A stretch of 64,000 bases of DNA from Macrostomum hystrix (taxonomy: Eukaryota; Animalia; Platyhelminthes). Within the stretch, counting starts at the first letter, position 1. Each line of letters starts with the position of its first letter. Positions 8,409 to 61,439 of this stretch are shown piece after piece. The position numbers and the translations under genes were made by a program. The stretch lies in NCBI GenBank assembly GCA_950097015.1, contig CATNEN010000030.1, positions 558,001-622,000 on the forward strand, read 5' to 3'. The notes beneath the pieces are model-generated. The model saw nothing but the letters and a program-made list of their open reading frames with translations. It was not told where the DNA came from and did no database searches.

Positions 8409-9926
8409 ATGGACGATATGTGCTCTTCACAACGGATTCTGACAGCGACACCGCCATCACAGACGATTCTGATCCAATGCAGTCTGCTGAAGATGGAGAC
8501 GATTTGCAGGAAAGTGGTGAAGATGTCGCTATCGATGAAGAAGGAGACGATTTGCAGGAAAGTGGTGAAGATGTCGCTATCGATGAAGAAGGAGACGACA
8601 GTTCTAAAGTCATGGAAGGATACTAACCGGGACGAGATCTCCAAGCTTCTGGGCATGCACCTCTTCATGGGAATCTCCCGGTAGCCGGAATTACACGATT
8701 ACTGGAGCACCAGTGACATTCACTGCACACCGTTTTTCCAGTCTCCATATGCCCTCACACGTGACAGATTCAAATAGCTGCTCTCGTTTCTTCGGTTTTA
8801 CAACGCACGCGAACCAGTCACGGATGATCCGCTGCACAAAATTCGGCCACTAATTCAACTGGCTCAGCGGCTCTGCAGCAACGTTTACCAGCCAGAGCAG
8901 CAACTTAGTGTTGATGAGTCTCTCATTCTGTATAAAAGAAGGCTTCAGTTCAGACAGTACATACCATCAAAGAGAGCACGAGTTGGTATAAAATTGTACT
9001 GCGCTTGTGAATCGACTTCTGGATATTTATACAGATTTCTGGTGCACTCGACTGCAGAAGAGAATTCCCGCTTTGGTGAAGACCTCGGCTGCGATCAACT
9101 GTCTCTAAGCGAGAGAATAGTAGTTGAACTGTGTAAGGATCTGCTTGATTTAGGCTACCACGTTTTCGTGGACAAGTGGTTTGCCTCTGCCAGACTTGCC
9201 AGTGTTCTGTACGTGTGCAGCACACTTTTCACAGGAACTGTTCGAGCCGACCGCGGAGTGCCTTTGTCGCTCCGTGGACGCCCGGTGCCAGTAAACGACG
9301 TTATCTTCATGAGAAAGCATCCTCTGCTAGCCATGAAGATCTCAGAGCGGAAGGAGAGCGGCTTGAAGACGATCTTTATGCTTGACACCCATGGCTCAGC
9401 TGACAAAGCCCAGGTACTGCGAATTCGCAAGAGTGGTAAAGTGGTACTGGTGCAGAAGAGCGCATCGAATTTGCTATTCAATCGCTGCATGGGAGGTGTT
9501 GACCGACTAGACGCCATGCTGAAGCCGTACGACAGCTGTCGAAAAACGTATAAATGGTTTCACAAGTTGGGATTGCACCTCTGCCTGCTTCTCGTACACA
9601 ATGCATGGGTTGTGCATTCATAGAACGGTGGTCGCTTACCATTTTTTAAGTTTCTGGAGCGATGCCTTGTTCATTTGGTGGAATCGACTGGCCCTGGCAG
9701 GCTGAGAGCAGCGCCCAGGATGCTGACAGGTGTCGCTGCCCAGCAGGAACGCCACTTTCCATCAAGGCTTCCACCAAACGACTCCACACCAAGACCGGCA
9801 AAGCGCTGCCGCGTGTGCTACAGCAGGGGCAATGCAAAGCGCACTGCTTTCTGCTGCACCGTGTGCCCAGGCGCCCCTTGACTTTGTCCCAGCTCCTGCT
9901 TCGAGGAGTGGCATGCGAATCACTAA
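8409..9926 (+). pseudogene. Decayed piggyBac (PGBD4-like) transposase
   Basis: Motifs SVDESLI, FRQYIPSKRAR.GIK, FVDKWF and MGGVDRLD, plus a C-terminal Cys-rich domain RCRVC...CCTVC...LCPSSCFEEWH. In-frame stops at 8682, 8775, 9621 and 9879. The acidic N-terminus is in another frame and carries a 48-bp tandem duplication (8495-8590). No TIR pair found. Confidence 0.92.
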
Positions 9927-10519: not shown

Positions 10520-13158
10520 TTAATGTCGCAATCGCGCCTCGCAATCGCCTATGCCGCCATTCATGACAGCCAGGCTGCTTATGAGAGCGAACATGCCCAG
10601 CGAAGGACCGACAGCGCAGAGGAGCAGCAGGCGGTCGATCGCTGAGCCGATCGCAATCCACTCCAGCCTGGAGTCCTGGTCCTCATGACATTTCAGAGTT
10701 GGCTTGGAAACCGAGTCAGAGCTGGCAGTCTCACTGCGCCTGTCACAGTTGATCACCTGTAATCGGAATCAGCGTAGGGATGGCCATTTTTTAATCACAT
10801 CTGGATGAAAGGTGATTCGCTGGCGGAATGCTAAACAGGCCTGTTTGTGTGACGTAGTTTAGTGTGAAGAAACAAAATTCAAACGTTTGTCTTACAACTG
10901 ACGCCCTGAAACCGCACAGGCGGTTGAGAAACAGCAGCCTCAGTGCGCGGTTGCCCACAGGCTTCTCCGATGCAGCTCTCCTGTAGCACATCAGCACAAT
11001 GATGCTGCCCACTGTGCTCAGAGCTGTCACCGCCATGGCCACCGTGAAGTACCAGGCTGGAGAGTGATTGCACACGGTGCTAGCTGTACACACTCAGCAC
11101 TGACTGCTGGCTAATGAACATGCGAGCTAAGCTCAACACATTGAGACTTACTGAGCACAGGCACGGACTCGCTCTGAGCAGGAGTGATGCTGCCAGCCAG
11201 CTGCAGGAACACACTCATTGACAGCAGAATGGCCACATTCAGAGCCAGCCTGTCGCCCGAGTCCGGCGGAATGAGAAACCCGAAGATGCAGGTGACGAGG
11301 ATGAGAGCGCTCGGGACGATGAGCACAGTGACGTAGTAGAGAGGCCTTCTCTGCAATGGGAGTCGGTATGAGGGGCTCCGTTTCTCACCAAAGTGGTGGT
11401 TTTTGCAGCGAGCAACGGAACCGATGTCCCTGGCTGCAGCTACTTGTAATAAAACAGATTTGACAGGTTGCAGGTCTCACCCTGAAGTGGATGGCAACAT
11501 ACGCCTGCTCTTTTTCGCTTTTCCTGTCGACACCAGTTTCCACAGCGATGATGCAGAACTCATTATTGTTAGAGAAAGGCACAAGGTGACCATAGAGAGA
11601 TCGTTGCACAGCGCTGATTCTTTGATGCTTGATACTTCTCATCGAGTTGAAGTAGACCCGGCAATGCTGAGTGTCGAATGGGAAGTCCCTCAGGGCCATG
11701 CTGCACTTGGTAGTGATGCCATAAGCCAGGTTGAGCTGCACTGAGCCGTTCGCTTGTACCTCGGCGAGCTGCTTGCTTATCTCGAAGGTGCGGAGCTCCG
11801 CGCTGAATACGAATGGATATACAATGTTGTAAGTAACAATGTCACTAATGAGAGATCAACGAAGTAGCTCAAAACCTACGGGTTTCTGACCCGGATATCC
11901 GGCACCCAGATCCAGTCCATTGGCAGGAAGATCTCGCTAATCTGGGATAGAGCTGCATCGCCGGACTTGTCCCAGGCCAGCCTTTTGTCGGTCCATTGCT
12001 TGGTGTAAGCGTTTATGAGGAATTTAATAGCCGTTGAGTGTTGAGTAAGATTAAGAGTTACGAGTTACGAGCGTACACACTTGAGTTTGTACTCAAGAGT
12101 CCACCAAATCCACTAACATTGGGACTGAAATCGAAGCCGACTTGCAAACTGTTCCGTCGAACCCAAACCTGTTTCATTAGTCAAGTACAACTTTATTATT
12201 CATTCTGTGGCGTAGAATAGTAAACTAGGCGACCTATCACCCTTGGGGCGATCAGATGCCTCTGAAGCTCGTGACTTTGCTCATAACTAATCTCAAGATT
12301 CAATTGTTGAGTTAGGATTTGAGTCCTAACTGGTCGGTCATCCTGCTGTTCGGCGTCGAAGCTACCTCGAACGCTTAGCTTAGGCTTAGGCTTAGGCTGT
12401 CTTACAGTCTCACCTTGATGAGGTGGGCTTGCATACAGACATCAGTGTCACTCTAAGCCTCAGATGCAGTGGCAATCAGAACCCGCTAGCGATGAACCAA
12501 CTGAATCAGCCAAGCCACCGGCTGCGCCGTTGCCAAGGATAAACCGATAACCTGAATGGTAACTTCTGACGCTGACCTGCAGGTCTTCTCACTAATTTGC
12601 CCCGTAGTCCGCTGCGACCTGCCACTCCCAAATGTACTACGAGATCTTAAGCGCTAGGGACATGTCATTTGCGTTGTAATTCGAGCTGCATACACGGCTC
12701 GTTTAACAATTACGAATAACAATTATGACACATGCCACCAAAGTATTGATTACTGATGGCTTTCTTGATTTTAGAACCGAAAGCACTGACTCACAAAGAT
12801 TATCCAGCTCTCTATTGAAATCAATTGTTTTACAGCGATCTGAAACGTAGCGAGAGTGGGTAGGCAGGTGAAATGTGGTTAAATTTCAGCGAAAAACAGC
12901 ATAGCTTTAGCTCACCACTTCAATCAGCTGGGTGACGATGCAGTCCAATGTGATATGATTAGCTCTGCCATTGTCAGGTGGCGGAGCTACACCCTTGGAG
13001 TAGTGAGTGGTCAGGTTCAACCAGCGGGTCACCAGCTCGTCTGGGGAGACCGCTGCGGCAGGAGCCGTCTGGCAGCGCGCAGAGAGCGGCTTGAGAAGCA
13101 GCAGCAGCAGCAGCAGTAGTGACAGAAGGCGGAGCATGCTTGTGCCCTGTGTCCGCAT
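10520..13158 (-). CDS. Divergent nicotinic-like Cys-loop ligand-gated ion channel subunit, copy A (~440 aa)
   Basis: Exons 13158-12916 (signal peptide), candidate 12452-12414 (least certain), 11998-11880 (QWTDKRLAW...WIWVPDI), 11802-11481 (Cys-loop CSMALRDFPFDTQHC), 11350-11152 (RRPLYY, M1, M2), 11056-10896 (M3) and 10756-10520 (EW...DRL, M4). All GT-AG and phase-compatible. Confidence 0.85.
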
Positions 13159-14006
13159 GCCGTGAACGTAGATAGTAGTTTGCATATATTAGATGGCTTT
13201 GGGTTGAGTATGACCAACAGAACGTAGTTAGCAAACACATCCTTGGACGTTGGCACACAAACGCGGAAATCGCAGAGTAAACACTAACTAGATTGACCGT
13301 GAGTATTTGTGCATGGTAAGCTCTGCAATAAACCTGGAGTATCAGAAACTGCCCCCCTCATTCTCATCTAATTCTGGGGTGGAATGATTATATCCAGCTC
13401 ACGATCCTTAGTCTCGCTTCACACCACGAATTCACATGTTTCACATGATTGCTAATGCATCAGCAATCAATTTAACAGACACGTTCGACGCGACTAGCAT
13501 ACCTCCCCAACCATTTCTGACGAGAAACTATATTAAATAAACGATTGACTAACCTTCTCGACTTCTCAAAGCGAAGGCTTGCGAGATGCGAGTATGCGAG
13601 AGCGGAGTATGCGAGAGACATTGCTAGCGCTGCTTCTCAGCATTTTGTGGTTGGTGGGCATTTAAAATACCTTAATGATCGATAACTTTTTTCTGTCCAC
13701 CCGACTATTTAAAAACTTTAGCGCTGAATTTATTACATATTAATTTATGATTGTGTCTTTTTTAATCAAAAACTGTCGAACACATGCAGAGATATTAGGA
13801 GTGTCTAAGAACTTTTTGGACGCACATAAGCTGCGCTCTCGAGTATCCTAAATTTTATTTTTAAAAGTTGAAGTCCATGACAGGAAAAAGGCAAAATTTT
13901 ATGCTCTCAAACACTTTACAAGCGTAATTTTGTCATCGATTGACTCAAAATTCCACGGTTTCCGAAGCCAAACGTTATCAGAAAATGTTTGCGCGTGAAT
14001 CGGGAC

Positions 14007-16263
14007 TCAACATGCGCTGAATCCGCCTTTCATAGCTGAGCCTATAAGGCACAGCGCAACAGCTACAGTCAAGCAGATAGCTACTGTGACAAGAAGCCAG
14101 TCCAGCACCCGCCCAATATGGCGCCACTCGTTGCAGTGATCCTGAAAATCGACACACACGATTTACTGGCTTAATAAAAGCAAGTTCAGATGAAATGAAG
14201 TTTCGCTATAAAAAGCTGCCTGACCTCGACTTTGGCCCAGCCGCACAGGCGGTTGAGAAACAGCAGCCTCAGTGCGCGGTTGCTCACAGGCTGCTCCGAT
14301 GCAGCTCTCCTGTAGCACATCAGCACAATGATGCTGCCCACTGTGCTCAGAGCTGTCACCGCCATGGCCACCGTGAAGTACCAGGCTGGAGAGTGATTGC
14401 ACACGGTGCTAGCTGTACAGACTCAGCACTGACTGCTGGCTAATGAACATGCGAGCTAAGCTCAACATTGAGACTCACTGAGCACAGGCACGGACTCGCT
14501 CTGAGCAGGAGTGATGCTGCCAGCCAGCTGCAGGAACACACTCATTGACAGCAGAATGGCCACATTCAGAGCCAGCCTGTCGCCCGAGTCCGGCGGAATG
14601 AGAAACCCGAAGATGCAGGTGACGAGGATGAGAGCGCTCGGGACGATGAGCACAGTGACGTAGTAGAGAGGCCTTCTCTGCAGTGGGAGTCAGGTGTAGT
14701 GATAACTTACACAGCACAACAGCTGTCTGTACAGCTGACAGTGACAGTGGCTGTCACCACTGTGTCTGTCCGGTACAGTACATACCTGAAATTTAACCTG
14801 CAATAAAATCTTCTTGAACTCTGGAAACGTGATTGAGAATTTCTCTACAGTTAGCGAGATGTTTGTCGTGCAGAACTCGTTGTCCCGACTGTTAAGCTCA
14901 TCGTAGTATACTCTCGGTGGCCCGCCCAGCTCCAGCTGAAGGAATTTCTGCTTCTTCACTGTGGAGGAAAAGTTGATTTCGCATTGTTGAGAATCGAATG
15001 GGAAGTCTCCGAGCTTCACTGGGCACTTGCTGACTAGGCCGTATGGCATCTCAATGTGCACCGCTCCAGTCGAGGTCACCGATGCAAGGAATTTGTCCTT
15101 GTCAAATATCCGGATATCAACCCTGTGCGAATTTACATCAGGTTATGGGACAGTAAGACTTATAAGATTGTTGCCAGGTGAGCTTCGAGGTCACTCACGG
15201 GTGGTTGAGTGTCACGTCGGGTATCCACAGCATGTCAATGGGCACAAATACCTCGTCCACCGCCGCCAGGCTGGTGTCGCTGGTGTCGTTCCAGGCGAGG
15301 CGGGCGTCAAGCCAGTCCTGCAGGTGTTTCGCGGGGTTTGTGATCTTCTGAGTTCCTAGTAATTTTTGTCCCGGTAATGCAGCGTTTCACCACGTCTGAG
15401 AGGCAGTGAGACCAGTCAGTCAGGTCACATAAATCTTACCATAACGAACCAGAGGTCCAACGATATCTCCTGCTTAACAATGTCCTGAAATGATTTTCGT
15501 CATTGATTAATGAAATGTACCTGTGAGGTAGCCATCCAAGAGTTAGCATTAGCACTATAACTGTGAATGGACTGATCGGCTACCTGCCCATCCGTAATCC
15601 TCACCTACCTACCAATCCGCTAATCCTCACCTACCTACCAATCCGCTAATCCTCACCTACCTACCAATCCGCTAATCCTCACCTACCTACCAATCCGCTA
15701 ATCCTCACCTACCTACCAATCCGCTAATCCTCATGGATCGGCTACCTGTCCATCCGCTAATCCTCACTGATCGGCTACCTACCAATCCGCAAATCCTCAC
15801 CTACCTACCAATCCGCTAATCCTCACCTATCTACCAATCCACTAATCCTCACCTACCTACCAATCCGCTAATCCTCACTGATCGGCTACCTACCAATCCG
15901 CTAATCCTCACTGATCGGCTACCTACCAATCCGCTAATCCTCACTGATCGGCTACCTACCAATCCGCTAATCCTCACTGATCGGCTACCTACCAATCCGC
16001 TAATCCTCACTGATCGGCTACCTACCAATCCGCTAATCCTCACGATGAGGATGTTAAATTTCACAATGTTGGCAGTTCCATTGTCAGGAGGAGGCGCGGC
16101 GCCTTTAAAGTAGCCACCATTGACGATCTTCAGCAGCTGGAGGATTTTCTCGTCGTTGGATATCCGGGCTTGCTGACCAGAGCTTGTGTCCGGATGCGCA
16201 TAGCAATAGATTGAGTATAATGGCCGTGGCTTGGAAGAATCTGATCGCATTTAGATGGGCCAT
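14007..16263 (-). CDS. Divergent Cys-loop channel subunit, copy B; signal peptide out of frame (frameshifted allele, pseudogene or assembly indel)
   Basis: Exons 16263-16026, 15484-15440 (DIVKQEISLDLWFVM), 15317-15199, 15122-14786 (CPVKLGDFPFDSQQC), 14677-14479, 14385-14225 and 14141-14007 (DHCNEWRHIGRVLDWLL...SAC*). ATG 16263 gives MAHLNAIRFFQATAIILNLLLCASG but is one base out of frame with the mature domain near 16180-16190. Confidence 0.8.
15577..16043. repeat. Minisatellite (33-bp and 26-bp units) made from the exon 1 end plus splice donor of copy B
   Basis: Minus-strand unit GTGAGGATTAGCGGATTG|GTAGGTAGCCGATCA repeats the last 18 exon bases and the donor. Confidence 0.92.
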
Positions 16264-16499
16264 GGGTTGGCACAGTTGATCTGACAGTACTCACAGTACG
16301 ATCACTGCATGGAAGGTTTTTATTGTATTCTCAGTCCCGCAAATGCTCCGGTAAACACAGACAGCCCGAGCACTACCATATGGAAACACATTGGAGGGTA
16401 GGAATTGGTCCCCAAACTGACAGTCCATGCCGGACTCATCAACTAACTAATGACTTTCTGACTGATGAAAATAAGGCTTTGAATTGTGGGCTGACAAAC

Positions 16500-17540
16500 G
16501 CTAGGTTAGGGTATTTTTGTAAGTGATGCATCGGACAGAACGTATCTTTTTGCATTGTAGACAACTGCTAGTTGTCTATGGTAAAAGATGTGTGTCATTC
16601 CGGCAGGCAGTTTAATCCCAAGGACCACTAGAAGAAGGACGGGCACTTCGTTTCTTGTAAAATTTATGAAAGTTTGATAACTTTTTATTGGAAGCAGATC
16701 CAACACTTTTCTTTTAAAATAACTTGCAAACATGTTGCTTCAACGAATTTTAAAAAGCTTTATTTATGGATAACTGATGTTCATTTTATTTTCGCTTATT
16801 TATCATGAAGCACAATAGCCAGTCAATAGCTATCTCGCAACAAAATCAACTTTACAGTCCCTTTCTGATCAAGTACAAGCGTATTACGAGAACTATGAAG
16901 AACTTTTTATAAAAGAATCAGTAGGCCTTATAAGCAAATGTTAATGCAATGATGATGCAACGATGCAATGTTGAAAGAACAGCACGGGATCTGCTTCTAA
17001 TAAATATTATAGTTATCAGCATTTAGATGTGAAAAACGTTCTTATCTTGCTAGTGAATTTTTCCGTGAAAATCATCAGCCTTGAATAAATTTTCCAAGCA
17101 TCGAAGTGTCTCGTCCTTCTTCTTCTAGTGGTATTGGCACTATCTTGCTCGACAGTTTCATTTATTTGATGCATGTCTTGTCTCTATAAATCAACATAGA
17201 ACAAGGTTCAGCAGTTAGTTCGCTTGACAAAACCTGCATATAAAGTCAAGAGAGGATTTTAGTCAGGAGCTTTCAGCAGCGCCTGCACATGTTCTAATGC
17301 CATCTTCGACGAATGGTCACCGTTCACTTCCGTTCACTGCGGCCAGTCATTTCTTACCTATCTTCGAATGCTTCACAACGATCTTGGCCTTTAAATCTAG
17401 GCAGAGCGCAACTCTTCTGTCGCCTCCGTTGATAGCGTCGATTATCGATTGGTGTTTTTCGTCGCTATTCGTTGCATATTGCACAGGTGGCGTTCCGGCA
17501 TCTTCGGCAGCGGTTCCGTCGATGTCTTCAAACATGGTTG
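16500..17540 (-). mobile_element. Possible highly decayed pogo/Tigger-like transposase remnant
   Basis: The fragment RRVALCLDLKAKIV resembles an N-terminal psq/CENP-B helix-turn-helix, and PVLLLV...LPAGMTH resembles a DDE_1 motif. Many stops; similarity is weak and judged by eye only. Confidence 0.3.
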
Positions 17541-17809
17541 AATCAAATTGATTAAGTAGTAGTGTCTACAAACTTGCAAAATGCGATATGAGGCTTGCAA
17601 ATGAAATTGGATTCACAAACAATGTGGGTGCGAAAATTTAATTTGTTAGCTAGAAACAATTTATATAATCATTAGATTTAGCTTACAAAAAAATTTAAAC
17701 AAAATTGAGTGAACTTCTAAAAGTGCCGCTTGTACTTGTTTTTCATGAAATTTTCTTTAAACTCGGACGGACGAAATACGACTTCTATTTCGCAATGCCG
17801 TGACTATAA

Positions 17810-19511
17810 TCAACAATTGCCGAAGTTGCTTCTTCGGCACAACACAACACTAGCACACGAGAGGCCGACAGCGCAAACCAGCAGCAGGCGGTCCAGAACA
17901 ATGCCAACACGGCGCCACTCACAGCCGGGCTCGTTGGAGTCGACACGAACACTTTTCAGGCTGCTGGAGTGAGGAGCCATAGGCAGGTTTGGTGAGACCA
18001 AAGTTGGTGAGCTCTATGTTGGTGAGGCTCTTGCAGCCGGGAATATTAACAAACATGGCTTATTGAAATTGCGCATAAAGCGTGGGATTCCACAAAGACC
18101 GAAATTCCACAAAGGCGGAATGAGAAATCCGAAGATGCAGGTGACCAGGATGAGAGCGCTCGGGATGATGAGCACAGTGACGTAGTAGAGAGGCCTTCTC
18201 TGCAGTTGGAGTCAACGGCGAGAGGCTTTTATGCTGTGCATTGCTATGTGTATATTAGCATGTTCATATCAAGCTATCTAATGCCAACCTTAAAGTTGAA
18301 TTTGACAAGAACTTTCTGGTAGAGTTCAGAATAGAATACTTGACTTCCCAGGATAGATGAGGCATCTTGAATGCAGAACTCATTGTTGCGATTTTTTCCG
18401 ACATCTTTTTCTGAGCTTCGTCCTGCACCTGCAGGTGCATTTGGACCTGCGATTTCACAGCTGATGAAAAGCTAACGGTGCACTGCTGAGTATCGAAGGG
18501 AAAGTACTGCAGGTCCATGATGCACTGGCTGGTTACGCCATAGCGAAGGCCGATTCGGACGTAGCCGCTTGAGTTCACGGACGCCAGCAACTTGCTGCTC
18601 TCAAAGTTTCTCACTTCAACTTTGCGTGATTTAAGTGGGTGTCACTATTATCTATTTAGACTAAAATGTCATTAGGTATTTCGGTAGCAACCCTCACGGG
18701 TGGTTCTGTGTCAAGTCGGGCACCCAGATCCAATCCAATGGCACGAAGAGAATCATTCCATGCGAGGCGCGAGTCAGTCCACATCTGCGACAGTTTTTTT
18801 AGTAAGCGACCAATATTTAATTGTCATGTGCGAGCAGCAACATCTGCGCCTCTTCATTTGAAAGCTTTCGACGGAAAATCAAGTAAATACTTACAGAAAT
18901 CCCACTGCGACTTACCATCATAAACCAAAGATCTATTGACACCTGCTGTAAAACAATGTCCTGGAACAGAAGTAGGGACACGTGTTTGAGCTTCCTTGGC
19001 TTATATACTCGTATTAATAAGAATATACTGGAGGGCTGCTGGCATATCATTTGGTGACACTAGACACGCAGCCAGTGAGGAGGCGTGCCCATTTCGCTGA
19101 ACTCCTGAGCACACACGCACACAGATACCGAACGCAGGCACACACTCACTAAGTTTTGTACATCTGCCCTGACTTTCTCATCGTCCAGCAGTGTATAGTT
19201 ATACCGCTCTGCCACTCAGCCCCTGCTTCCTTCGCTTAGATAGAAAAATCGCATTAAGTCCCATCATTCCGCGAATCAAAATAAGCACTTACCACGCGAC
19301 TTCGTTTTAAAAACAATATTTTTACATCCACATTGTTCGCAGTTGCATTGTCTGGTGGAGGTGAAGCGCCCGTGCAGTAGCTGGTGGTGATATTCAGCAG
19401 CTGAATGATCTTCTCCTGGTTGGACATTCGCGCCTGCTGGGCTGAGCAGGTGATCTCAAGAAACTGCAGCAGCAAGTGCAGGGCTGCAAGGGGCTGCAGT
19501 CTGCCCCACAT
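17810..19511 (-). pseudogene. Cys-loop channel pseudogene, copy C
   Basis: Exons 19511-19293, 18960-18916, 18784-18698 (87 nt versus 119 nt in paralogs, a 32-nt frameshifting deletion), 18621-18289 (acceptor reads CAA; 1-nt deletion in an A-run near 18395), 18199-18114 (M1 only, breaks after FLIPP) and an M4 relic at 17810-18001. M2 and M3 are absent. Confidence 0.9.
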
Positions 19512-20237
19512 AGTCAGAATGTTTGCGATACAGGAGAGCCCCATCGGGAGTTTTAAAATTGTCATTTGCTGGCTCCGGTTTGACGTAAATTGCCTGCATT
19601 TATGTGCACGGTTTGACTGGGTAATCATTGAGCAGCATTTGCTCACGCAGACCTTCGGTCAATAACTTCTGTCAATATAGCCGACGGTACTGGACTCAAA
19701 TATTTATGGCAGCGCTTCGGCAGATTTTAATTCCCTTCACTAGATTAATGAGCCTGACAGACCGCAATCTGATTGAGTCCGATACCGAACTTAATTTGGA
19801 GAGAATAATACACGCAAAAAGGCATGTATGTGAGGTGAGAAAAAGGTGAGAAAAAGGTGAGAAAAGTGCTCGAATGCAGAGCATGGACCACTAGTAGTTG
19901 GTTTCAATTTTTTATTAATGGGTAGTCAATGCTGGTACCCATTCTACAGCTGCGTGAACTGAAGCGATGGAATACAAGAGCTGTGTACGCCCTTGAAGCG
20001 ATTAAAGACAAGGACACATAAAGAGTTATGCTCTTTGAAGCTCTAACAACTTGGGCTAAAAGTCAAGTAATAATAGTATTAAAAATATTTCCAGTACTGC
20101 CCATAAAAAAATCGATCCTACAAAATATTGAATAATGTTAGTTCGTATCTAAATTTTCTCCCAGTCAAAAAGCACTCGGGAAACACGAATTCACGAGTAG
20201 TAATAGACAATGGCATCCACTTTGGCTTGGGCTTATT

Positions 20238-22190
20238 TCAGCAGCTCGAAACCCCGTTCTTAATGGGCACAATGATCAGGAGCAGGACAGCGGCTGAGGC
20301 CAAGCACAGGGCGCAGCCGGCCAGGAGCCGATCCACCAGTGAGCCGACCCGGCGCCACTCGCCTCCTTCATCTTCGCCGCCCGACCTGCCGCACAGCCGG
20401 TTGAGAAATAACAGTCTCAACAAGCGGTTCCTCACGATTTCCTGCGATGCAGACTTCTTGTGGCACAGCAGCACAATGACGCTGTTCACAGTGCACAGGG
20501 TTGTGACTGCCATTGCCATCGTAAAGTACCAGGCTGAAAATTTGTGCAGTTTCTTGGAGAATTAAATACCAAGCACAATAATGCCAATGCTTATCGAATG
20601 ATTCCTTATCTGAAACTCACTGAGCACAGGTACAGACAAACTCTGAGCAGGAGTGATGCTGCCAGCCAGCTGCAGGAACACACTCATTGACAGCAGAATG
20701 GCCACATTCAGAGCCAGCCTGTCGCCCGAGTCCGGTGGAATGAGAAACCCAAAGATGCAGATGACGAGGATGAGAGCGCTCGGGATGATGAGCACAGTGA
20801 CGTAGTAGAGAGGCCTTCTCTGCAATGGGAGTCAGGAGTCACAGTCACTATGGCTTTTTGGCTTACCTTTTTTTGCGGCAGGCCCAACTGCGGATGGCTA
20901 ATTGTGTCGTTAAGTGCTCATACCTTGAAAGTTATCGTCACATCGACTGACTTGTAGTTATCGCATAAGTTAGAATCAATCACTGTGATTTCCTTAGTGC
21001 AAAATTCGTTGTCTTCTTTGTTGAATTCTTCTAAATTAGTTTTATTTCCTAGGTCCACATTCACTCGCAGGTGTTCTTCTGTCTTTACGGCAGATGAGAA
21101 TCTTATTTTACACGTCTGCGTGTCAAACGGGAATTCCATCAGCTTCATTGAGCACTTTGCGGTCACTCCGTATGGCGTGCCGAACAGTACGGTACCGTTC
21201 GAGTGCACAATTGACAGCAGTTTATTGCTCTCGAAATTCCGAATTTCGACTCTGTTGTTTAATTTTGAAAAAAGTCAACGACTTGACAGGTTTTTGTACC
21301 GTCTCTGTACTCAATGACAACTCAATACTTAGCACTGCTCAAATGGGCTCTTACGGGTGGTCTACGGTCAAGTCAGGCATCCAAAGCCAGTCATTCGGCA
21401 GGAATATCTTCTCAACTAAGGCGAGGCTGGGGTCCTTAGTGCCATTCCAGGCAAGGCGCCTGTCAATCCACTTCTGAAATTTCGCAATGAGATTTATTTT
21501 CGACTGGGGTTCTTTGGATGTGAATGCTCCTATCAGAATTTTGTGCATTGTAGTGTGGTTTTAAAAGTGCTTAAAATGTGCTTCGCTTTTAGTCCTTTTC
21601 AGTTCAGTCTCGCTTAATCATTCATTATCCTAATTGCCTGTAACTTTAGGAGGCCAAGGTTGATGTTGTGTACCGAAATTTGATAGTCAGCTGGTGTTTA
21701 TATTTGTTCTTGTTTTTAAACTCAAGAATGAATACACTATTCAGGCAGTGATTTTGAATAGTGCACAATGACGTTTTACAATTACGAGTAGATAAGTTAT
21801 ACATTGAAGCCATCCTTACCATGGTGAACCAGAAATCCAATGATACTTGCTGCTTCACGACATCCTAAAGGACATTTATAATTTACGCATATGCATTTTA
21901 GCTTAACTGAAAATCAAATCAGCAAGTAAAACCAATTGACTAACCACAGCGCTAAGCTTTGTAACAATAACATTCACAGTCACCGTGTTGGCTGTTCCAT
22001 TGTCTGGTGGTGGCGAGGCACCCTTGCAATAGCCCGTTGTGAGATTCAGCAGCTGGATGATTCTCTCCTGGTTGGAAATCACGGCCTGTTGCTCATTAGC
22101 CATGCAGGGGTTTCCATGCAGTGCCTGCAGCAGCAGCAGCAGCACCTGCAGGGTGGCCGCCATCGGTATAACAATCAGCTTTGGTCGCAT
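20238..22190 (-). CDS. Divergent Cys-loop channel subunit, copy D (~410 aa, intact, 6 exons)
   Basis: Exons 22190-21945, 21864-21820, 21473-21355, 21251-20924 (CSMKLMEFPFDTQTC), 20819-20621 and 20533-20238 (M3 to M4 with no intron). All junctions GT-AG and in phase. Confidence 0.92.
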
Positions 22191-22520
22191 TAGCCAGCCA
22201 GACTAATGTAATAGTATCAGCTCGCTCTATGGTGACCAAAACTGAGCTGCGTATGTCGTATTTAAGGAGTCTAAAATGAGTTCATCTGACTTCGTGTGTT
22301 TGCACAATAGCCAGGTATGTTTGCGTGCGTTTGCAGATTGGCTCTATGCGAGTGATTTGGATCAGGGCTATTTGGATTGTTTATTGGTAGCAGTGGATTG
22401 CAGGACATCAAGAAGGAGGGCATATGCAATAATCAATGCATGGAGCCATTGGATATTGGGTTTAACAGTGGGGTGAGGGTCGGGTATGGCTGGCAGCCAA
22501 TACTGGTAACAATAGCATTC

Positions 22521-22945
22521 CCCAGTGCAAAGCCACTGGCCGGTCTCTCCTCCTATCCCTGCAGTGTTAGCCTTCCCCAGTGCAAAGACATTGGTCGGTC
22601 TCTCCTCCTATCCCTGCAGTGTTAGACGTCCCCAGTGCAAAGACACTGGCCGGTCTCTCCTCCTATCCCTGCAGTGTTAGCCGTCCCCAGTGCAAAGCCA
22701 TTGGCCGGTCTCTCCTCCTATCCCTGCAGTGTTAGCCGTCCCCAGTGCAAAGGCATTGGCCGGTCTCTCCTCCTATCCCTGCAGTGTTAGCCGTCTTCTA
22801 AGACTTCTAAAACTGGCTGTAGTAAACATAAAAAGAAGCACACCAGCCGACGCGGAAACGGCGCCAACGGCAAGCAGTCGGTCGATGCTGCGGCCAATTT
22901 GACGCCACCCAGTGCAAAGACATTGGCCGGTCTTTCCTCCCCACT
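22521..22945. repeat. 55-bp minisatellite interrupted by an M4-exon relic of the channel family
   Basis: Five units start at 22521, 22576, 22631, 22686 and 22741. They are followed by 22796-22907 (minus strand WRQIGRSIDRLLAVGAVSASAGVLLF, near-identical to copy E M4) and a partial unit at 22908. Confidence 0.85.
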
Positions 22946-23572
22946 CCGTCTTTTCTCTCGCGATGTACAGAGAGGGCGATGGGGCAAGGCCTGCTCCAAG
23001 GTTCGTGAGATCAAAGGAAATAGAGGATGCGCCTGTGATGACAAGGATGCACAAGGATGTGTAAAAAAAAACCGCGTGTGTTCCCCAAAAAGGTGACAAA
23101 ACTTGCTAGTTATTTGAAAGTTCGCAGTCGACAATGATCCACAATTTCATCGTCAGAGTTAAAGACTCTTGATTCTATAGCACAGAACCTCATGGAGTGA
23201 GGAGTTTGGACAGTCTTCAAGATTTAGGACTTGAGAGTATTCATTTCGAAACAGTTGCAGTCCACTCATGTGCTTTACTTCAATTCGCTCATAAGTCGAA
23301 ACGCCTCTGGTCCACATAGTTCGTACATGATTTATACGGTCGGACCTGCAGCAACAATAGTGATCGGCATTGTATTTCAAACTTTCACAATCCTTTCTCA
23401 TTTCGTTATTTAACCTGTCCCAAGAGCGATGGCTGTGTAAAAGAGAGAGTTCAAGGCTATTTCTGAATGATTTGTTAACAATTAGTTCTACAGTCTCAAA
23501 GAAAGCATCAGGCTTCATTAGGCTCCATATAGCTTATATCCTTTCATGATTGACGAATGCCACTGTAGCACG

Positions 23573-26500
23573 TCAGGGGCAGCTTAATGGGCCATTGCCG
23601 TAGGCTGCAGCAAACAGAAAAAGAAGCACACCAGCTGACGCGGAAACGGCGCCAACGGCAAGCAGTCGGTCGATGCTGCGGCCAATTTGACGCCACTCGG
23701 CGCCGTCAACTGGAGCATTCTTTGCCATTGAAGACGAGCTGGGAGCAGGGTCAGCAAACTCTGACACATCATCGGGCTTGACCACCGGCTGAAGAGTGAT
23801 ATTTGATCTTGGAGGACTCATGTTCTTGTAAGAAAAGCTGCTTATCTCTCAAATAATTATCTCACCTCGCCTTGGGCCCAGCCGCACAGGCGGTTGAGAA
23901 ACAGCAGCCTCAGTGCGCGGTTGCTCACAGGCTGCTCCGATGCAGCTCTCCTGTAGCACATCAGCACAATGATGCTGCCCATTGTGCTCAGAGCTGTCAC
24001 CGCCATGGCCACCGTGAAGTACCAGGCTGGAGAGTGATTGCACACGGTGCTAGCTGTACACACTCAGCACTGACTGCTGGCTAATGAACATGCGAGCTAA
24101 GCTCAACATTGAGACTCACTGAGCACAGGCACGGACTCGCTCTGAGCAGGAGTGATGCTGCCAGCCAGCTGCAGGAACACACTCATTGACAGCAGAATGG
24201 CCACATTCAGAGCCAGCCTGTCGCCCGAGTCCGGCGGAATGAGAAACCCGAAGATGCAGGTGACGAGGATGAGAGCGCTCGGGACGATGAGTACAATGAC
24301 GTAATAGATTGCGAGTCTCTGGTAATGGATGAGTTCGCAGATTCTGTGAAGTCTTGTACTATAAAATGTGCTACCTGTTTCGACTCCTAGCTCTCGTTTA
24401 TTACGAAGCCACAGTTTGTATTCCCACCTTAAAAACGACAATGACGGTCGCCTGTTGATATTCTCCGTAGACGTTATGCAGCTTGGAATCTATGTCGATT
24501 ATGCAGTACTCGTTGCTGCGCAGAAACTTTATTGAATAGAGGATGGCCGGGCTCTGCTGCACCACCAGCTCCATGGTGCTCTTCGGTTTGAGCGCAGCCG
24601 AAGCCATACTGAAGGTGCAGCTCTGCGAGTCGAATGGAAAGCTTTCCATGTGCATGTTGCACTTTATTGTGACGCCGATGGGGTGGTTCACAGTCACTTG
24701 ACCGTCTGACCGGATGTTGGCTAACAGCTGGCTGCGGTCGTAGCTGCGGATCTCTGCACTGGATGGACGGGGAGAAACAGGCGCATTTGTAAACAGCGCG
24801 AATCATAAATATTCTCAGGCAAATAAATTGATGTTCCTGGGAGCTTTATGACGACTTTAATGTGACTTCAATTCATCTTGGAAACCATTTTGTCACAGGC
24901 TTATCTGTTAAAGTAGAAAGTGTTTGTGCCTCTCGCACCAAGTTCCCTGAGCTCGATTCCGCGGCGAGGCCGCATTCATTTGTGGTGCAGCCTCGGAGAG
25001 AAGGCTTGGGGGCTTGTCATGTATTTTACGCTCTTGAGGGCAAACCTCCAAGGCACTGTGATAGTATATACTGCCTGATGATGAGAAAGTCAGAGCAGAT
25101 GTACACACTTATGTGGCCTGTGCTCAGGAGTCAGCGAAATAGCAGAATTGCCTCCTCGCTGGCTGCGGGTCTACTGTCACCAAATGATGTGCCCGCAGCC
25201 CAACAATAATTATTATTGTTTGTATTACTGCTGGAATTGATGCTTCTCAGACAATTCCTGGAAGCCCCTAAACTTTGCTAGTGACAATTGAAATCGTCAT
25301 TGAAGAAGCTGAGAAAATCGTGTGGATCGAAGTTAAAGCCTGGACTAATCTCACGGCTGATTAATGTAGACGTCAGGTGTCCAGACCCAGTCCATCGGTG
25401 CGTAGATACTTTTGTTTTTGCCAGCCAGTTCTGCGCTGGCGAGTGTACGCCAGGCCAGCCGAGGGTCGGTCCAGATCTGCGATTTCGAAGGAATTGGCCA
25501 AGGCTAGGTTTCATTTCTTAGAATGCTTAACAGTAGAAAGACCGCGCTGATATTAAAAAAACTGAATGACCAATTTTCGTGAAAGTCTACCATGGGTAAA
25601 CATTTTTCGCCCTATATACGATGAACTAACTTTCAAAGCCGTCAGCATCGTCGAGATATTCTGCGACTCTTGTCGAACACCATGGTGACAAGGGCAACAA
25701 ACACTGCTCAATGGCGAATCCAGATTGGTGAAATAATTAACACTACATTAGCATCAATAATTACCTATACTGGTGGTTTTTGCCACCACACCCGACGAGA
25801 ATCGTGAATATCTCGATGCCTTTTGATTATGAAAGTTTTTTAATCGGATAGAGGGGAACATTTTAGCCCGTGTTCTGGATTTTCATGGCTAACAGTTAAA
25901 TATTTTGGAAGATGAATGTAAAACATGTGTACCTGAAATACCCCGTGGTGTTTGCCTGTTTCTTACCATTGCGATGGTGCATTCCAGTGTAACCAGCTGC
26001 TTGACCATATCCTGGAACGAAGAAGTTATCCATTGAAGAAATATTCACCTTAACTATGATGAGGAAGTTGGGGGTGAGTGGCAGAGCGGTTAACGCGTTT
26101 GCCTCTCGCACCTAGGTCCCTGAGCTCGATTCCGCGGCAAGGCCACCTTCATTTCTGGCGCAGCCGCGGAGAGAAGGCTTCGGGGCTTGTCGTGCAATTT
26201 ACGCCCTTGAGGGCCAACCTCCAAGGCACAGTGGCAGTGTAGACTGCAGGAAAATGAGAAAGTCAAGCACAGAAGTTCATAGTTCGTACATGATTTATAC
26301 GGTCGGACCTGCAGCAACAATAGTGATCAGCATTGTATTTCAAACTTTCACAATCCTAGTTATTTGTAGCCGTCTTCTAAGACTTCTAAAACTGTCTGTA
26401 GTAAACATAAAAAGAAGCACACCGGCCGACGCGGAAACGGCGCCAGCAATCCAGCAATGGCAGATGTACACACCTGTGTGAGCGTGTGCCTGCGTACAGT

Positions 26501-26965
26501 ATCTGTGTGCGCGTGTGCTCAGGATTCAGCGAAATGGGCAGAATTGCCTCCTCGCTGGCTGCGGATCTAGCGTCACCAAATGATGTGCCATTGCCCGCAG
26601 CCCTCCAGCTTATTATTATTATTATTTTATTATGACGAAGTTGGAAAACGAATTAGATTTCATATAAATCGCGAGTTAGTTAACTGAATTCTTTTTTTGC
26701 ACTTTTTAGATCTGTCTTAGAGAATTATGTCACTTCTGCTCACCACATTCATCAGCTTGACCAGGTTGATCGTGATGATGACGGTATGAGCGGTGCCATT
26801 CGCTGGCTTCGGTGACGCGCCCTTGTTGTAGCCGCCTGCATCGGTGAGGTTTAGCAAGCGAATGACCTGGTCATCGGTAGATAGCTCCACTGAGGCAGCT
26901 GCTGGCGATGGCTGCTGCCACGGAAGAGTCAGCAGCAGAATAAATAAAGTCCGTCTCAGAAGCAT
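23573..26965 (-). CDS. Divergent Cys-loop channel subunit, copy E (~443 aa, intact, 7 exons)
   Basis: Exons 26965-26744, 26011-25967 (DMVKQLVTLECTIAM), 25476-25355 (IWTDPRLAW...WVWTPDV), 24758-24428 (CNMHMESFPFDSQSC), 24318-24120, 24026-23866 and 23824-23573. All in phase; the last intron is only 41 nt. Confidence 0.92.
24912..25222 (+). mobile_element. tRNA-derived SINE, family 1 (5'-degraded copy)
   Basis: B-box-like gagctcgattcc, a body shared with the 26070 and 33221 copies, and a 3' end caccaaatgatgtgcc followed by a (tta)n tail. Confidence 0.8.
26070..26630 (+). mobile_element. tRNA-derived SINE, family 1, carrying a ~190-bp insertion of local sequence
   Basis: Head ggtgagtggcagagcggttaacgcg...gagctcgattcc and a (tta)n tail. 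Sequence between ~26267 and ~26458 interrupts the family motif gagaaagtca|gggcagatg. Further partial minus-strand copies at ~19043-19190, ~28664-28885, ~37870-37997 and ~60770-60965. Confidence 0.85.
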
Positions 26966-36597: not shown

Positions 36598-37161
36598 TAT
36601 TAGACAAAGTGATAACGCACAACAAATCTTTAAATATAGCGGAAAACTCTATTAATACGAATATATAAATTGCACAAACCCGAATCAGTGACAAACCTAA
36701 GTGCCTTAATTAAAGAGAAAAAGTATTTTCCTTGGCCTGAGATTCGAACTCCCGACCTTTCGGTTAGAAGTCCGAAGCTTTAACAGCTGGACTATATTCT
36801 AGAAGCGTCACTCTTTTATTAAACTTGTCAGTCCGTCGATTCCTACTAACACATATTCCGCTGCATTGCACAGGGACGCGTCAGTGTGACTCAGCAACGG
36901 AGCTAAAAATAGCATTCACACATTTCAATTACCGATTTTGCGGGCCCTCGTCAGAGATTCTAAAAATAGACAGGCGGGGGAATCCCTCGCCGTCCTCCAA
37001 ACCCTCTTTTTTGGGCGGAGTGAGGGTTGCGTTTAAACCTGTGCCAGCGTGGCAAAAATCCATCGACGCAGTATATAAATAAGTCCAGTTGCACATCGTC
37101 TAAAACATCCGTTAGAGCACTTGGGTCTTAAGTCTCATTGGAATTCAAAGCCTCCAATACC

Positions 37162-37821
37162 ATGGATTATGACTATCTATTCAAACTAGTCCTGACCGGC
37201 TGCAGCTCGGTGGGCAAGACCAGCCTGCTGCACAGGTTCATGGACGACGAGTTCCTCTCTGTTGGCATACCAACCATCGGGGTGGACTTCCGCATCAAGC
37301 AGGCGAGCATCGATGGGCAGCAGGTGAAGCTGCAGATCTGGGACTCAGCGGGCCAGGAGCGATTCCAGGCCCTGACCAGGCAGTATTACAGAAACGCCAG
37401 CGCGCTCTGCGTTGTCTTCGACGTCACCGACCACGCGAGCTTCGAACGAGTAGCCGACTGGCTGGCCGAATTCGAGCTCTACGGCTGCTCCGACGCGCCA
37501 AAGTATCTGGTTGGCAACAAGAACGACCTGCCGGATAGCAAGCGCCAGGTGCCCAGACAGCTAGCCGAGGAGTTCGCTGCCGGCCGCGGCCTGACCTTCT
37601 TTGAGACGTCGGCCCGCACCGGTGAGCACGTGCAGGAAATGTTCCTGGGCATCGCTGGCAGCCTGCTGGGCATGGCCAAGCGACAGGAGCTGCAGCCATT
37701 GGGTCGGGGCATTGGCGCGGACCGCAGACTTCGCGGCCCGGCCACCCGGCCTGTACCGGCCGCCTCGGCCACTGTCCGACTGGGCCAGAAGCTGCAGGGA
37801 GCACTGTCTTGCTGCCAGTGA
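37162..37821 (+). CDS. Intronless Rab GTPase (Rab1/8/35-like, divergent), 219 aa
   Basis: YDYLFKLVL, G1 GCSSVGKT, switch I PTIGVDF, G3 WDSAGQERF, G4 NKND, G5 ETSAR, and a C-terminal CCQ prenylation motif. Confidence 0.92.
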   Translation: MDYDYLFKLVLTGCSSVGKTSLLHRFMDDEFLSVGIPTIGVDFRIKQASIDGQQVKLQIWDSAGQERFQALTRQYYRNASALCVVFDVTDHASFERVADWLAEFELYGCSDAPKYLVGNKNDLPDSKRQVPRQLAEEFAAGRGLTFFETSARTGEHVQEMFLGIAGSLLGMAKRQELQPLGRGIGADRRLRGPATRPVPAASATVRLGQKLQGALSCCQ

Positions 37822-43500: not shown

Positions 43501-46500
43501 CTCTGAAATTGAATTTGGTAACTCTTGGATTTCACATGAAATTCTACCGCTTTTTGAGAACTCACAAATTAATCGATCAAGGGTTAAAAATCATAAAATT
43601 TTCTGCTCTCTTTTTCAAGCAATGCAAAGTGCCAGTATATGAAAGAATCATTTACTTAAAGCTCCTCGAGTCAACCGAGACGCGATTTCTTTGGATTTTC
43701 CATGGACTTTCCATGGATTTATCATAAATTTTCCTAGGATTTCCCATGGGCTAGGGCTACACCACGTTACTCACCCTGTCCGGACCGGCGTCGCCACGCA
43801 CCAGGCAGTGCAGCAGGGCCTCATTAAGCGGCATCTGGGCCTCCTCTTTGAAGCCAAAATAGTGCATCATTGCAGCCAGCGCCATGACGTCGTAAGCGTT
43901 GCCGAAGCCACCGTCGGTGCCGCGCTCGCCGCGCAAGTCGAAATAGGCGCGCAGGTGACGCTCGGCGCCGGTTCGATCGCGCCTCCGGATAGAATTGAGA
44001 TAGCGCAGGAACAACAGCGACTCCAGGCCCGGGTGCAGGCCGCACAGCTGGCTCAGCCGCTCCTCCAGCTCGATGGGATTGGCCGCTACGGACGGATTGT
44101 GCTCAAATAGGAAGGCCTGCTCGGCGACTAGAGCCTCGGCGCGGCGCCTATCCAACTGCCAGGCGTCTGGCTCGTCTTCTGGCCGGAACCGATTCACGTC
44201 TAGCAGACCGAGAGTGCTCAGCTCCTGATAAAAGTTGGAGGACCGATATTTTCAAGAGGAAGCTAGGTCTGAAGGCTAATGGATGGAGGAAGCTAAGCCC
44301 GAAGGCTAATGGATGGAGGAAGCTAAGCCCGAAGGCTAATGGATGGAGGAAGCTAAGCCCGAAGTCTAATGGATGGAGGAAGCTAAGCCCGAAGGCTAAT
44401 GGATGGAGGAAGCTAAGCCCGAAGGCTAATGGATGGAGGAAGCTAAGCCCGAAGGCTAATGGATGGAGGAAGCTAAGCCCGAAGGCTAATGGATGGAGGA
44501 AGCTAAGCCCGAAGGCTAATGGATGGAGGAAGCTAAGCCCGAAGGCTAATGGATGGAGGAAGCTAAGCCCGAAGGCTAATGGATGGAGGAAGCTAAGCCC
44601 GAAGGCTAATGGATGGAGGAAGCTAAGCCTTTTCAAAGTTCGTAAAAGCCTCACCAGCTCCTCATTCTGCCGCCTACGCAGATCGTCAGGCCCTGCAAAC
44701 GTGTCGTTAGCGTCCACCGAGCCGTAATAGTACATGCGCAGCCGACCGACAAAGTTATAGGCCTGGGCAAAGGTGCGCGACTGGAAAGCGTAAACAACTT
44801 TGCGCATGAAGGCGCCGCAGACACTGGTTGGGGCCAGGCCGAGCCCCGCCTTGCCGTTACCGCCGCCCACTCCTCCTCCTCCGCCGACGCTGACGCCACC
44901 GCCGCGACCCTCATCGCGGAACATCGAATTTAGCGCCGGATAGGACAGGTAGGACTCCAGGTAGTTAAATGGACTGTGCGTCTCCTTTGTTGGCATCTTC
45001 ATAAAGAACTGACGCATGCGCCTATCCACCTGGGGAATAGTGAGTGAGTGAGTGAGTGAGTGAGTGAGTGAGTAAGTGAGTAAGGAAGTGAGTGAGTGAG
45101 TGAGTGAGTGAGTGAGTGAGTGAGTGAGTGAGTGAGTGACTGTGTGAGGAGTGAGTGAGTGAGTGAGTAAGGAAGTGAGTGAGTGAGTGGGTGAGTGAGT
45201 GAGTGAGTTAGTGAGTGAGTGAGTGAGTAAGTGAGTGAGTGAGTGAGTGAGTTAGTGAGTGAGTGAGTGAGTAAGTGAGTGAGTAAGGAAGTGAGTGAGT
45301 GAGTGGGTGAGTGAGTGAGTTGGTGAGTGAGTGAGTGAGTGAGTAAGTGAGTGAGTAAGGAAGTGAGTGAGTGAGTGGGTGAGTGAGTGAGTAAGGAAGT
45401 GAGTGAGTGAGTGGGTGAGTGAGTGAGTGAGTGAGTGAGTAAGTGAGTGAGTAAGGAAGTGAGTGAGTGGGTTAGTGAGTGAGTAAGTGAGTGAGTAAGG
45501 GAGTGAGTGAGTGAGTGAGGGAGTAAGGAAGTGAGTAAGTGAGTGGGTGAGTGAGTGAGTGAGTAAGGAAGTGAGTGAGTGAGTGGGTGAGTGAGTGAGT
45601 GAGTGACTAAGTGAGTGAGTAAGGAATTGAGTGAGTGGGTGAGTGAGTGAGTGAGTGAGTGAGTGAGTAAGTGAGTGAGTAAGGGAGTGAGTGAGTGAGT
45701 GAGTGAGTAAGTGAGTGAGTAAGGAAGTGAGTGAGTGAGTGGGTGAGTGAGTGAGTGAGTGAGTTAGTGAGTGAGTGAGTAAGTGAGTGAGTAAGGGAGT
45801 GAGTGAGTGAGTGAGGGAGTTAGTGAGTGAGTGAGTAAGTGAGTGAGTAAGGAAGTGAGTGAGTGAGTGGGTGAGTGAGTGAGTGAGTTAGTGAGTGAGT
45901 GAGTAAGTGAGTGAGTAAGGGAGTGAGTGAGTGACTGTGAGTGAGTGAGTGAGTGAGTGAGTGGGTGATTGAGTGAGTGGGTGAGTGGGTGAGTCAGTGA
46001 GTGAGTGAGTGGGTGAGTGAGTGAGTGAGTGAGTGAGTAAGTGAGTGAGTGAGTGAGTGAGGAGTGAGTGATAGATAGGGTGATTGAGTGAGTGACTGTG
46101 TGAGGAGTGAGTGAGTGAGTAAGTGAGTGAGTGAGTGAGTGAGTGAGGAGTGAGTGAGTGATTGAGAGGGTGATTGAGTGAGTGAGTGAGTGAGGAGTGA
46201 GTGAGTGAGTGAGTGAGTGAGTGAGTGAGTGAGTGAATGAGTGAGTGAGTGAGTGAGTGAGTGAGTGAGTGAGTGAGTAAGTGAGTGAGTGAGTGAGTGA
46301 GTGAGTGAGTGAGGAGTGAGTGAGTGATTGAGAGGGTGATTGAGTGAGTGAGTGAGTGAGGAGTGAGTGAGTGAGTGAGTGAGTGAGTGAGTCAGTGAGT
46401 GGCACAGAGGACTAACCTGTTTGCACAGTGTCGGCTTCATGACGGCCCTGCCCCGGGCTAGCAGTGCCTCCATGGGGAACAGCTGGCTCTCATCCAGCTG

Positions 46501-53010: not shown

Positions 53011-53016
53011 GATTCT

Positions 53017-53430
53017 AAATGGGGGGAATTACTGCTCTGCTGCTGGGGGGATTACTGCTCTGCTGCTGGGGGGAATTACTGCTCTGCTGCTGGGGGGGGG
53101 AATTACTGCTCTGCTGCTGGGGGGGGGGGAATTACTGCTCTGCTGCTGGGGGGGGATTACTGCTCTGCTGCTGGGGGAGAATTACTGCTTTGCTGCTGGG
53201 GGGGGGATTACTGCTTTGCTGCTGGGGAGGAATTACTGCTCTGCTGCTGGGGGGAATTACTGCTTTGCTGCTGGGGGGGAATTACTGCTTTGCTGCTGGG
53301 GGGGGAATTACTGCTCTGCTGCTGGGGGGGGAATTACTGCTCTGCTGCTGGGGGGGGGGAATTACTGCTCTGCTGCTGGGGGGAATTACCGCTTTGCTGC
53401 TGGGGGGGGAATTACTTCTCTGCAGCTGGG
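53017..53430. repeat. Minisatellite with variable G-run (~23-28 bp unit)
   Basis: Tandem (g)5-10 aattactgctctgctgct, abutting the 21-bp array. Confidence 0.95.
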
Positions 53431-61210: not shown

Positions 61211-61439
61211 GTATCTTCTACTATCTACTGACACCTTAGTTTGTCAGTTTAGCAAATATTATTCTGTTTAGACCCTGATTACACGTGTACCTTAATCTTG
61301 GAAATTATCTGATTCACTATTGCTACGCTCGTACATAACATGACATCTATACGGCGTATTATCGCTTAACATTGAGCACTAACCTCTTTAATGTTAGTTT
61401 GATAGAGTGATTGCCTACAACTTAGAGATTTAATTCTGA

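Follow-up and report, generated by a model that had tools for sequence, protein, structure and literature searches.

A tandem array of nicotinic-like receptor genes in the flatworm Macrostomum hystrix encodes, with a probability that we put at roughly 0.7, subunits of a Macrostomum-lineage orphan branch of the cationic pentameric ligand-gated channels (pLGICs) of the nicotinic acetylcholine receptor (nAChR)/5-HT3 type. The array lies in a stretch of 64,000 nucleotides (contig CATNEN010000030.1, positions 558,001 to 622,000), which is called the window below; it comprises five copies, named A to E. This reading is carried by the loss of the principal-face residues that hold acetylcholine (ACh), by a cation-type pore sequence, and by a phylogenetic position in a clade made up of Macrostomum proteins. 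The most distinctive feature of the array is gene conversion of the pore module.

A first-pass annotation, made from the letters of the window, had described five head-to-tail receptor genes. Searching with exon translations by tblastn confirmed the array: five co-linear homologous exon sets lie head-to-tail on the minus strand between 10520 and 26965, the outer limits coinciding with gene ends (10520 is the stop codon of A, 26965 the ATG of E). No further exon homologs were detected elsewhere in the 64-kb window when the exon translations of the first copy, and then those of copy D, were used as tblastn queries. Pfam placed Neur_chan_LBD (PF02931) and Neur_chan_memb (PF02932) above the gathering score on the exon translations of A, B, C, D and E. 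Gene models were derived from a three-frame reading of the minus strand, and every intron in them is GT-AG:

10520–13137, minus strand: gene A, 7 exons (13137–12916, 12839–12795, 11998–11880, 11802–11481, 11350–11152, 11056–10896, 10756–10520)
14007–16263, minus strand: gene B, 7 exons (16250–16026, 15484–15440, 15317–15199, 15122–14786, 14677–14479, 14385–14225, 14141–14007)
17810–19511, minus strand: pseudogene C, with exons 1 and 2 intact, the M4 exon present, and M2 and M3 absent
20238–22190, minus strand: gene D, 6 exons (22190–21945, 21864–21820, 21473–21355, 21251–20924, 20819–20621, 20533–20238)
23573–26965, minus strand: gene E, 7 exons (26965–26744, 26011–25967, 25476–25355, 24758–24428, 24318–24120, 24026–23866, 23788–23573)

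The common exon plan claimed for these copies was borne out by intron phases that are identical in every one of them. Exon 1 encodes the signal peptide and the N-terminal helix; exon 2, which is 45 nt long in all five copies, holds the position of the loop D Trp; exon 3 (119–122 nt) has loop A at its end; exon 4 carries the Cys-loop together with loops B, F and C; and exon 5 (199 nt) encodes the pre-M1 stretch and the transmembrane helices M1 and M2. M3 and M4 occupy exons 6 and 7, and only D joins them in a single exon. The M3–M4 loop is unusually short (~45–90 residues).

The copies differ in their state of preservation. A is intact, with an open frame of 434 amino acids that contains the signal peptide, the Cys-loop and M1–M4. 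D (410 amino acids; M3, a loop of ~45 residues and M4 within one exon) and E (431 amino acids; loop D Trp replaced) are intact as well. C is a pseudogene with three lesions: exon 3 measures 87 nt instead of 119 owing to a 32-nt deletion that shifts the frame, exon 4 changes frame ahead of the NEFC motif, and exon 5 ends abruptly after M1, at ~18113. The frame of B is open for 406 amino acids from the ATG at 16250, and the N-terminus so encoded is without a hydrophobic core and gives no signal peptide. A typical signal peptide is encoded from the ATG at 16263, one base off that frame, the shift lying near 16176–16191; a small intron that would rescue it was ruled out, no GT donor being present within the 88 nt concerned. 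B is either a very recent pseudogene or the product of an assembly indel. The count of five receptor genes given in the first-pass annotation thus holds for A, D and E, but B is doubtful and C is a pseudogene. The shared protein features it had listed fared similarly: the C-x13-C Cys-loop is found in all five copies, and the four transmembrane helices in A, B, D and E but not in C; the signal peptide has its exception in B, and the pre-M1 motif RRPLYY, claimed for all copies, reads RLAIYY in E.

The ACh-binding residues were judged by alignment to true alpha subunits (Drosophila alpha7, Trichuris alpha, Nematostella alpha2 and a Lineus alpha10-like protein), with which the HMMER alignments agree. 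As had been proposed, the loop A Tyr is replaced by R/N/D/N and the loop B Trp by M/T/A/A in A/B/D/E, and loop C is several residues shorter, with no vicinal Cys-Cys in any copy and both Tyr absent. With these residues replaced, a canonical ACh principal face is not possible, and the copies show neither the loop C Cys-Cys nor the principal-face aromatics of alpha-type, ACh-gated subunits. The further statement that the aromatic box is gone proved too broad: the principal-face residues are lost, but the Trp that loop D contributes to the complementary face is still found in A, B, C and D. Presence of this residue, which is looked for in non-alpha subunits, does not alone show pairing with an alpha subunit. 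It is replaced in E and likewise in E's partner from Macrostomum lignano. In place of the GEW motif of strand beta-9, every Macrostomum member carries NEFC or NEYC, which serves as a marker of the clade.

M2 starts with DSGDR (−4′ to 0′) and has Leu at 9′, a cation-type arrangement. Flatworm anion-selective ACh-gated channels (SmACC type) carry a Pro-Ala-Arg motif at the start of M2; this motif is absent from the array, in which all copies read SGDR. Matches of the M1–M2 exon in the PDB were confined to 5-HT3A and nAChR chains (E 2e-12), with no GABA or Gly receptors among them. The sequence evidence supports nAChR-derived subunits that are predicted to be of the cation type.

An exhaustive HMMER search of 1.84 billion representative proteins was run with the M1–M2 exon as query, and matches were rescored with the full-length proteins of the window. 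The only close full-length relatives found in this search were UniRef proteins of M. lignano (A0A1I8 series), annotated merely as containing a Neur_chan_LBD domain. They share with the array the clade described below, the lost residues of loops A, B and C, NEFC or NEYC in place of GEW, and the short M3–M4 loop, and the lineage of E has the pre-M1 variant RL..YY in both species; they differ in overall sequence, identities running from 54% (A and the protein P0004) to about 70% (E and the partial protein P0005; 71% over 140 residues). These identities, together with pore residues peculiar to each species, indicate that the window comes from a Macrostomum species other than M. lignano. P0003 is a further relative, and P0007, P0029, P0151 and P0152 are more distant ones, while P0001 and P0002 are fused multi-copy models, which implies tandem arrays in M. 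lignano too. Next-nearest are nAChR-like proteins of hemichordates, a crinoid, a nemertean, nematodes, cnidarians and insects, at 24–30% identity. Word-indexed searches returned M. lignano proteins only, whether the query was P0004, the ligand domain of P0004 or a profile of 7 Macrostomum sequences; this is weak evidence of absence elsewhere given that few candidates were scored and that an E-value cut-off of 1e-20 in one of these searches hid weaker matches. The best PDB matches of P0004 were alpha7, muscle beta and 5-HT3A (E 1e-30); Foldseek, run with a predicted structure of P0004, put the same families at the top, which indicates a general nAChR/5-HT3 fold only. A query of the ESM Atlas with the ligand domain yielded generic Neur_chan_LBD clusters only.

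In an IQ-TREE tree of 38 rows, sampled from the 150 proteins nearest by the M1–M2 exon and with 5-HT3A as outgroup, all 13 Macrostomum rows fall into a single clade (100/99), whose branch measures 1.05 changes per site and which includes an inner group at 100/98. Its sister group comprises all the remaining nAChR-like rows that were sampled (95/98). None of the beta-like, alpha-like or alpha10-like rows falls inside the clade (100/99), so the one-to-one grouping with conserved non-alpha or other known subunits, which the first-pass annotation had named as a finding that would speak against it, was not observed. Within the clade, A pairs with P0004 (99/98), E with P0152 (100/99) and B with D (97/92). 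From the A/P0004 and E/P0152 pairings it follows that the ligand-domain lineages A, B/D and E predate the split of the two Macrostomum species. P0007, an early-branching M. lignano member, keeps the loop B Trp (FGSW) and already has the xEYC of the clade; the ACh residues were therefore lost stepwise within the clade.

These results support the independent expansion that had been proposed, in that the clade is confined to Macrostomum among the sequences reached and stands apart from all sampled nAChR groups of other phyla. Its separation from the sampled groups also argues that the expansion was independent of the cephalopod one; the tree holds no mollusc member within the Macrostomum clade, cephalopod chemotactile receptors (CRs) not being among its 38 rows. 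The description as a novel family is justified as far as the lineage-specific clade goes, but M. lignano members already stand uncharacterised in UniProt and similar expansions have been described in molluscs and annelids (PMC6896357, PMC10338036). No paper on the family in Macrostomum came up in our literature searches. The comparison as a whole supports a lineage-specific orphan family derived from nAChRs.

A tract of ~450 bp, covering M1–M3 and including intron 5, is 98% identical among A, B and E (blastn), and the flanking exons are ~50% identical at the DNA level. The tract begins 14 bp ahead of exon 5, spans intron 5 and stops ~16 bp short of the end of exon 6; its positions in the individual copies are as follows:

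10912–11364, minus strand: conversion tract in A, 98% identical to B (14241–14691) and E (23882–24308) by blastn
14220–14697, minus strand: conversion tract in B, from blastn and the proportion of synonymous differences (pS)
23861–24308, minus strand: conversion tract in E, which begins 10 nt inside exon 5, directly after the divergent RLAIYY codons
20385–20839, minus strand: homologous tract in D, ~80% identical overall (exon 5 91–95%, intron 5 50–59%)

Intron 5 itself is 98–99% identical among A, B and E. By the Nei-Gojobori method, pS in M1–M3 is 0.01–0.05 among these three copies and 0.22–0.27 against D, while it reaches 0.68–0.86 in the ligand domain, where it is saturated, and 0.64–0.80 in the M4 exon. 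Since synonymous and intronic sites are near-identical along with the protein, we attribute the tract to gene conversion; purifying selection as the cause of the pore identity was ruled out on the same grounds. The tract in D reflects either an older or a shorter conversion. The same process is visible in the second species: three M. lignano paralogs that differ in their ligand domains carry one and the same version of the corresponding 59-residue pore stretch, and this version differs from that of the window at 4–5 of the 59 positions, each difference being common within a species. As a result, the pore tract clusters by species and the ligand domain by ortholog. The conversion may be due to the mere adjacency of the copies or may have been favoured for heteromer compatibility.

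On this constant pore sit ligand domains that are 27–36% identical over their last 70 residues. For the comparison of extracellular and transmembrane parts that the first-pass annotation had proposed, we obtained proportions of nonsynonymous differences (pN) of 0.31–0.44 in the ligand domain. Synonymous sites there are saturated between paralogs, and all that can be stated is that pN is well below pS; the ligand domains of the intact copies are therefore on average constrained, rather than drifting or freely diversifying.

Copy loss has left further traces in and around E:

22815–22908, minus strand: relic of part of E's M4 exon, between D and E (96% identity over 94 nt)
26396–26445, minus strand: second M4-exon relic, inside intron 1 of E (90% identity over 50 nt)

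Birth-and-death turnover, which had been suggested for the array, can thus be seen in pseudogene C, in the doubtful B and in the two relic M4 fragments, but it has not been very fast, because A and E each retain a one-to-one M. lignano partner.

Signs of transcription come from public sequencing runs. A search for RNA runs containing gene D listed none. Five runs from the same organism contain parts of gene D, and the contigs of four of them were compared with positions 20200–26199. Run X1 covers the whole compared stretch at ~80x and is probably the assembly's own DNA. In run X5, from another study (2020), the introns of E are uncovered and contigs join 24120 to 24026 (E exons 5 and 6). X5 contigs also begin precisely where E exon 4 ends (24428), matching the ligand domain specific to E without a mismatch, and stop precisely where E exon 3 starts (25476); further, they cover E exon 7 and the 3′ untranslated region down to 23362. 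Run X2 has a contig that ends exactly at 20533, the acceptor of D exon 6, and leaves the D introns uncovered. These low-depth contigs fit spliced transcripts of E and D and support the splice sites of the gene models. A 721-nt contig of run X3, a probable DNA run, joins an exon-6-like piece directly to an exon-5-like one (contig 17; 20621–20826 and 23865–24026; 9 mismatches to D). Its source may be not RNA but a paralog without introns at another place in the genome.

In the reading that we favour, A, D, E and perhaps B would give rise to proteins with a secreted-type N-terminus, a beta-sandwich ligand domain with a Cys-loop, four helices and a short M3–M4 loop, and these products would assemble as pentameric cation channels. 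Their principal faces would be unable to hold ACh by cation-pi contacts, and another ligand would gate them, alone or in heteromers. The array itself evolves by tandem duplication, its ligand-domain exons being old and diverged; copies have decayed (C, the relic M4 fragments, possibly B), and recurrent conversion has kept the 450-bp M1–M3 module, intron included, near-identical in A, B and E. Several points weigh against this reading. The loop D Trp of A–D could still offer a complementary face to an ACh-binding partner. The tree drew its outgroups by similarity of the pore exon and left out other flatworms and the CRs; the AlphaFold model of P0004, built from a 7-row alignment, is poor (pLDDT, the predicted local distance difference test, 56). 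The library types of X5 and X2 are unrecorded, and joints between pore exons are by themselves no proof of transcription, so that only the E- and D-specific pieces count.

The loop D Trp, which survives in four copies, makes a role as complementary partner the main rival. In this reading, the products would be non-alpha-like, structural subunits that co-assemble with ACh-binding alpha-type subunits and tune an ordinary cholinergic receptor. Vertebrate non-alpha subunits are likewise without the loop C Cys pair, and a near-identical pore module would suit co-assembly. Yet the Macrostomum clade lies outside the other nAChR-like rows and has no orthology to the sampled non-alpha groups, E and its M. 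lignano partner are without the loop D Trp, and the many paralogs with very different ligand domains offer more variety than a structural role needs; we consider this explanation rather unlikely. The chemosensory reading was the inference of the first-pass annotation: a flatworm analogue of the CRs, expressed peripherally, whose variable ligand domains would recognise chemicals from the environment, from prey or from mates. We keep it as a tentative possibility, on balance improbable. The ACh residues are lost as in CRs (PMC11526382), the family is lineage-specific and tandemly clustered, the ligand domains are highly divergent on a constant pore, and low depth in presumably whole-animal runs is what would be expected for genes used by few cells. 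On the other hand, one-to-one orthologs have been kept across two Macrostomum species with ligand-domain pN well below pS, and there is no sign of the strong diversifying selection reported for CR pockets, synonymous divergence (dS) being saturated and site tests not possible. Moreover, for many divergent nAChR-like genes of invertebrates, expression has been placed in development, immunity and stress responses, away from the sense organs (PMC6896357).

A reading of the entire array as junk in decay, a dead tandem duplication from which nothing functional is made, would fit the three disabling lesions of C, the out-of-frame signal peptide of B and the relic exon fragments. It is hard to reconcile with A, D and E being open across 6–7 exons with canonical splice sites, with the low ligand-domain pN relative to pS, with orthologs kept in M. 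lignano, and with E- and D-specific contigs that end at exon borders, and we regard it as highly improbable.

A parallel outside Macrostomum comes from cephalopods. Hydrophobic compounds gate their CRs, whose expression has been shown in sensory cells of the suckers (work of van Giesen 2020, Allard 2023 and Kang 2023, summarised in PMC11526382 and PMC10338036), and CRs are the one case with proven sensory function (PMC11526382). Like the array, CRs descend from nAChRs, are of the cation-channel type, make no use of the ACh site, stand in tandem in one lineage and have divergent pockets; they differ in their demonstrated sensory expression and ligands. No CR chain was among the best 60 PDB matches of P0004, and all close relatives of the family are from Macrostomum. 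In molluscs and annelids, nAChR-like genes have undergone massive lineage-specific expansion in tandem, many of them lacking the Cys pair or the ACh residues, according to a survey that did not cover flatworms (Jiao et al. 2019, PMC6896357), and Alpo4 is an orphan annelid receptor without a ligand in which the aromatic residues are kept (PMC10338036). The array resembles these in that the ligands are not known and that similarity lies between nAChR and 5-HT3. It differs from the molluscan expansions, which are largely intronless retrocopies, in keeping its plan of 6–7 exons, and intron-inclusive conversion of a pore module is not described for the mollusc and annelid expansions in PMC6896357 and PMC10338036. 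With alpha7, muscle beta and 5-HT3A the copies have in common the pLGIC architecture, a cation-type M2 and MX-/MA-like segments around a short loop; they differ in being only 20–25% identical, in being without the loop A Tyr, the loop B Trp and the Tyr-x-Cys-Cys of loop C, and in an M3–M4 loop that is much shorter.

As it stands, the array is one more divergent nAChR-like tandem array, a pattern documented in lophotrochozoans. Should a ligand be found, it would represent a third independent re-use of ACh-receptor descendants, after the cephalopod CRs and orphan annelid receptors such as Alpo4, and its host is a flatworm that can be made transgenic. Pore-only, intron-inclusive homogenisation, which took place separately in two species, provides a clean natural example of domain-restricted concerted evolution in ion channels and hints that pore compatibility between paralogs is under selection. 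A more speculative idea, which we think doubtful, is that Macrostomum independently made a modular chemoreceptor repertoire convergent with the cephalopod CRs, in which divergent ligand domains would be combined with an interchangeable pore kept by conversion, allowing free co-assembly. If so, a design with a "variable head, constant pore" would be maintained at the DNA level.

Several repeats lie within or between the copies, among them a minisatellite in B:

15580–16043, minus strand: minisatellite in intron 1 of B, units of 26/33 nt in ~16 copies, filling nearly the whole intron

Each unit of it consists of the last codons of exon 1 plus the GT donor, and the first several copies are in frame, so that splicing from a later donor would lengthen the protein by repeats of 11 residues. 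A 55-nt minisatellite with 5 copies at 95% identity (22519–22795) lies between D and E and adjoins the relic M4 fragment there. A very high-copy repeat occurs in introns of E (24800–25200 and 26000–26200) and in intron 1 of C (19012–19231). Its summed contig word depth in X1 is 380,000–790,000, as against ~83 for unique sequence, and the repeat probably represents a short, abundant transposable element.

Elsewhere in the window, a plus-strand open reading frame of 281 codons (8778–9620), located just downstream of gene A, looks by eye like a fragment of a PiggyBac-like transposase, and the N-terminal P-loop region of another plus-strand frame (37132–37818) resembles, again by eye, a small Rab-type GTPase. 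Long low-complexity or tandem-repeat tracts at 44150–46400 (minus strand), 52070–53450 and 61400–64000 are open in several frames, for example as LTHS repeats, and account for the strong GC-skew swings in the composition profile.

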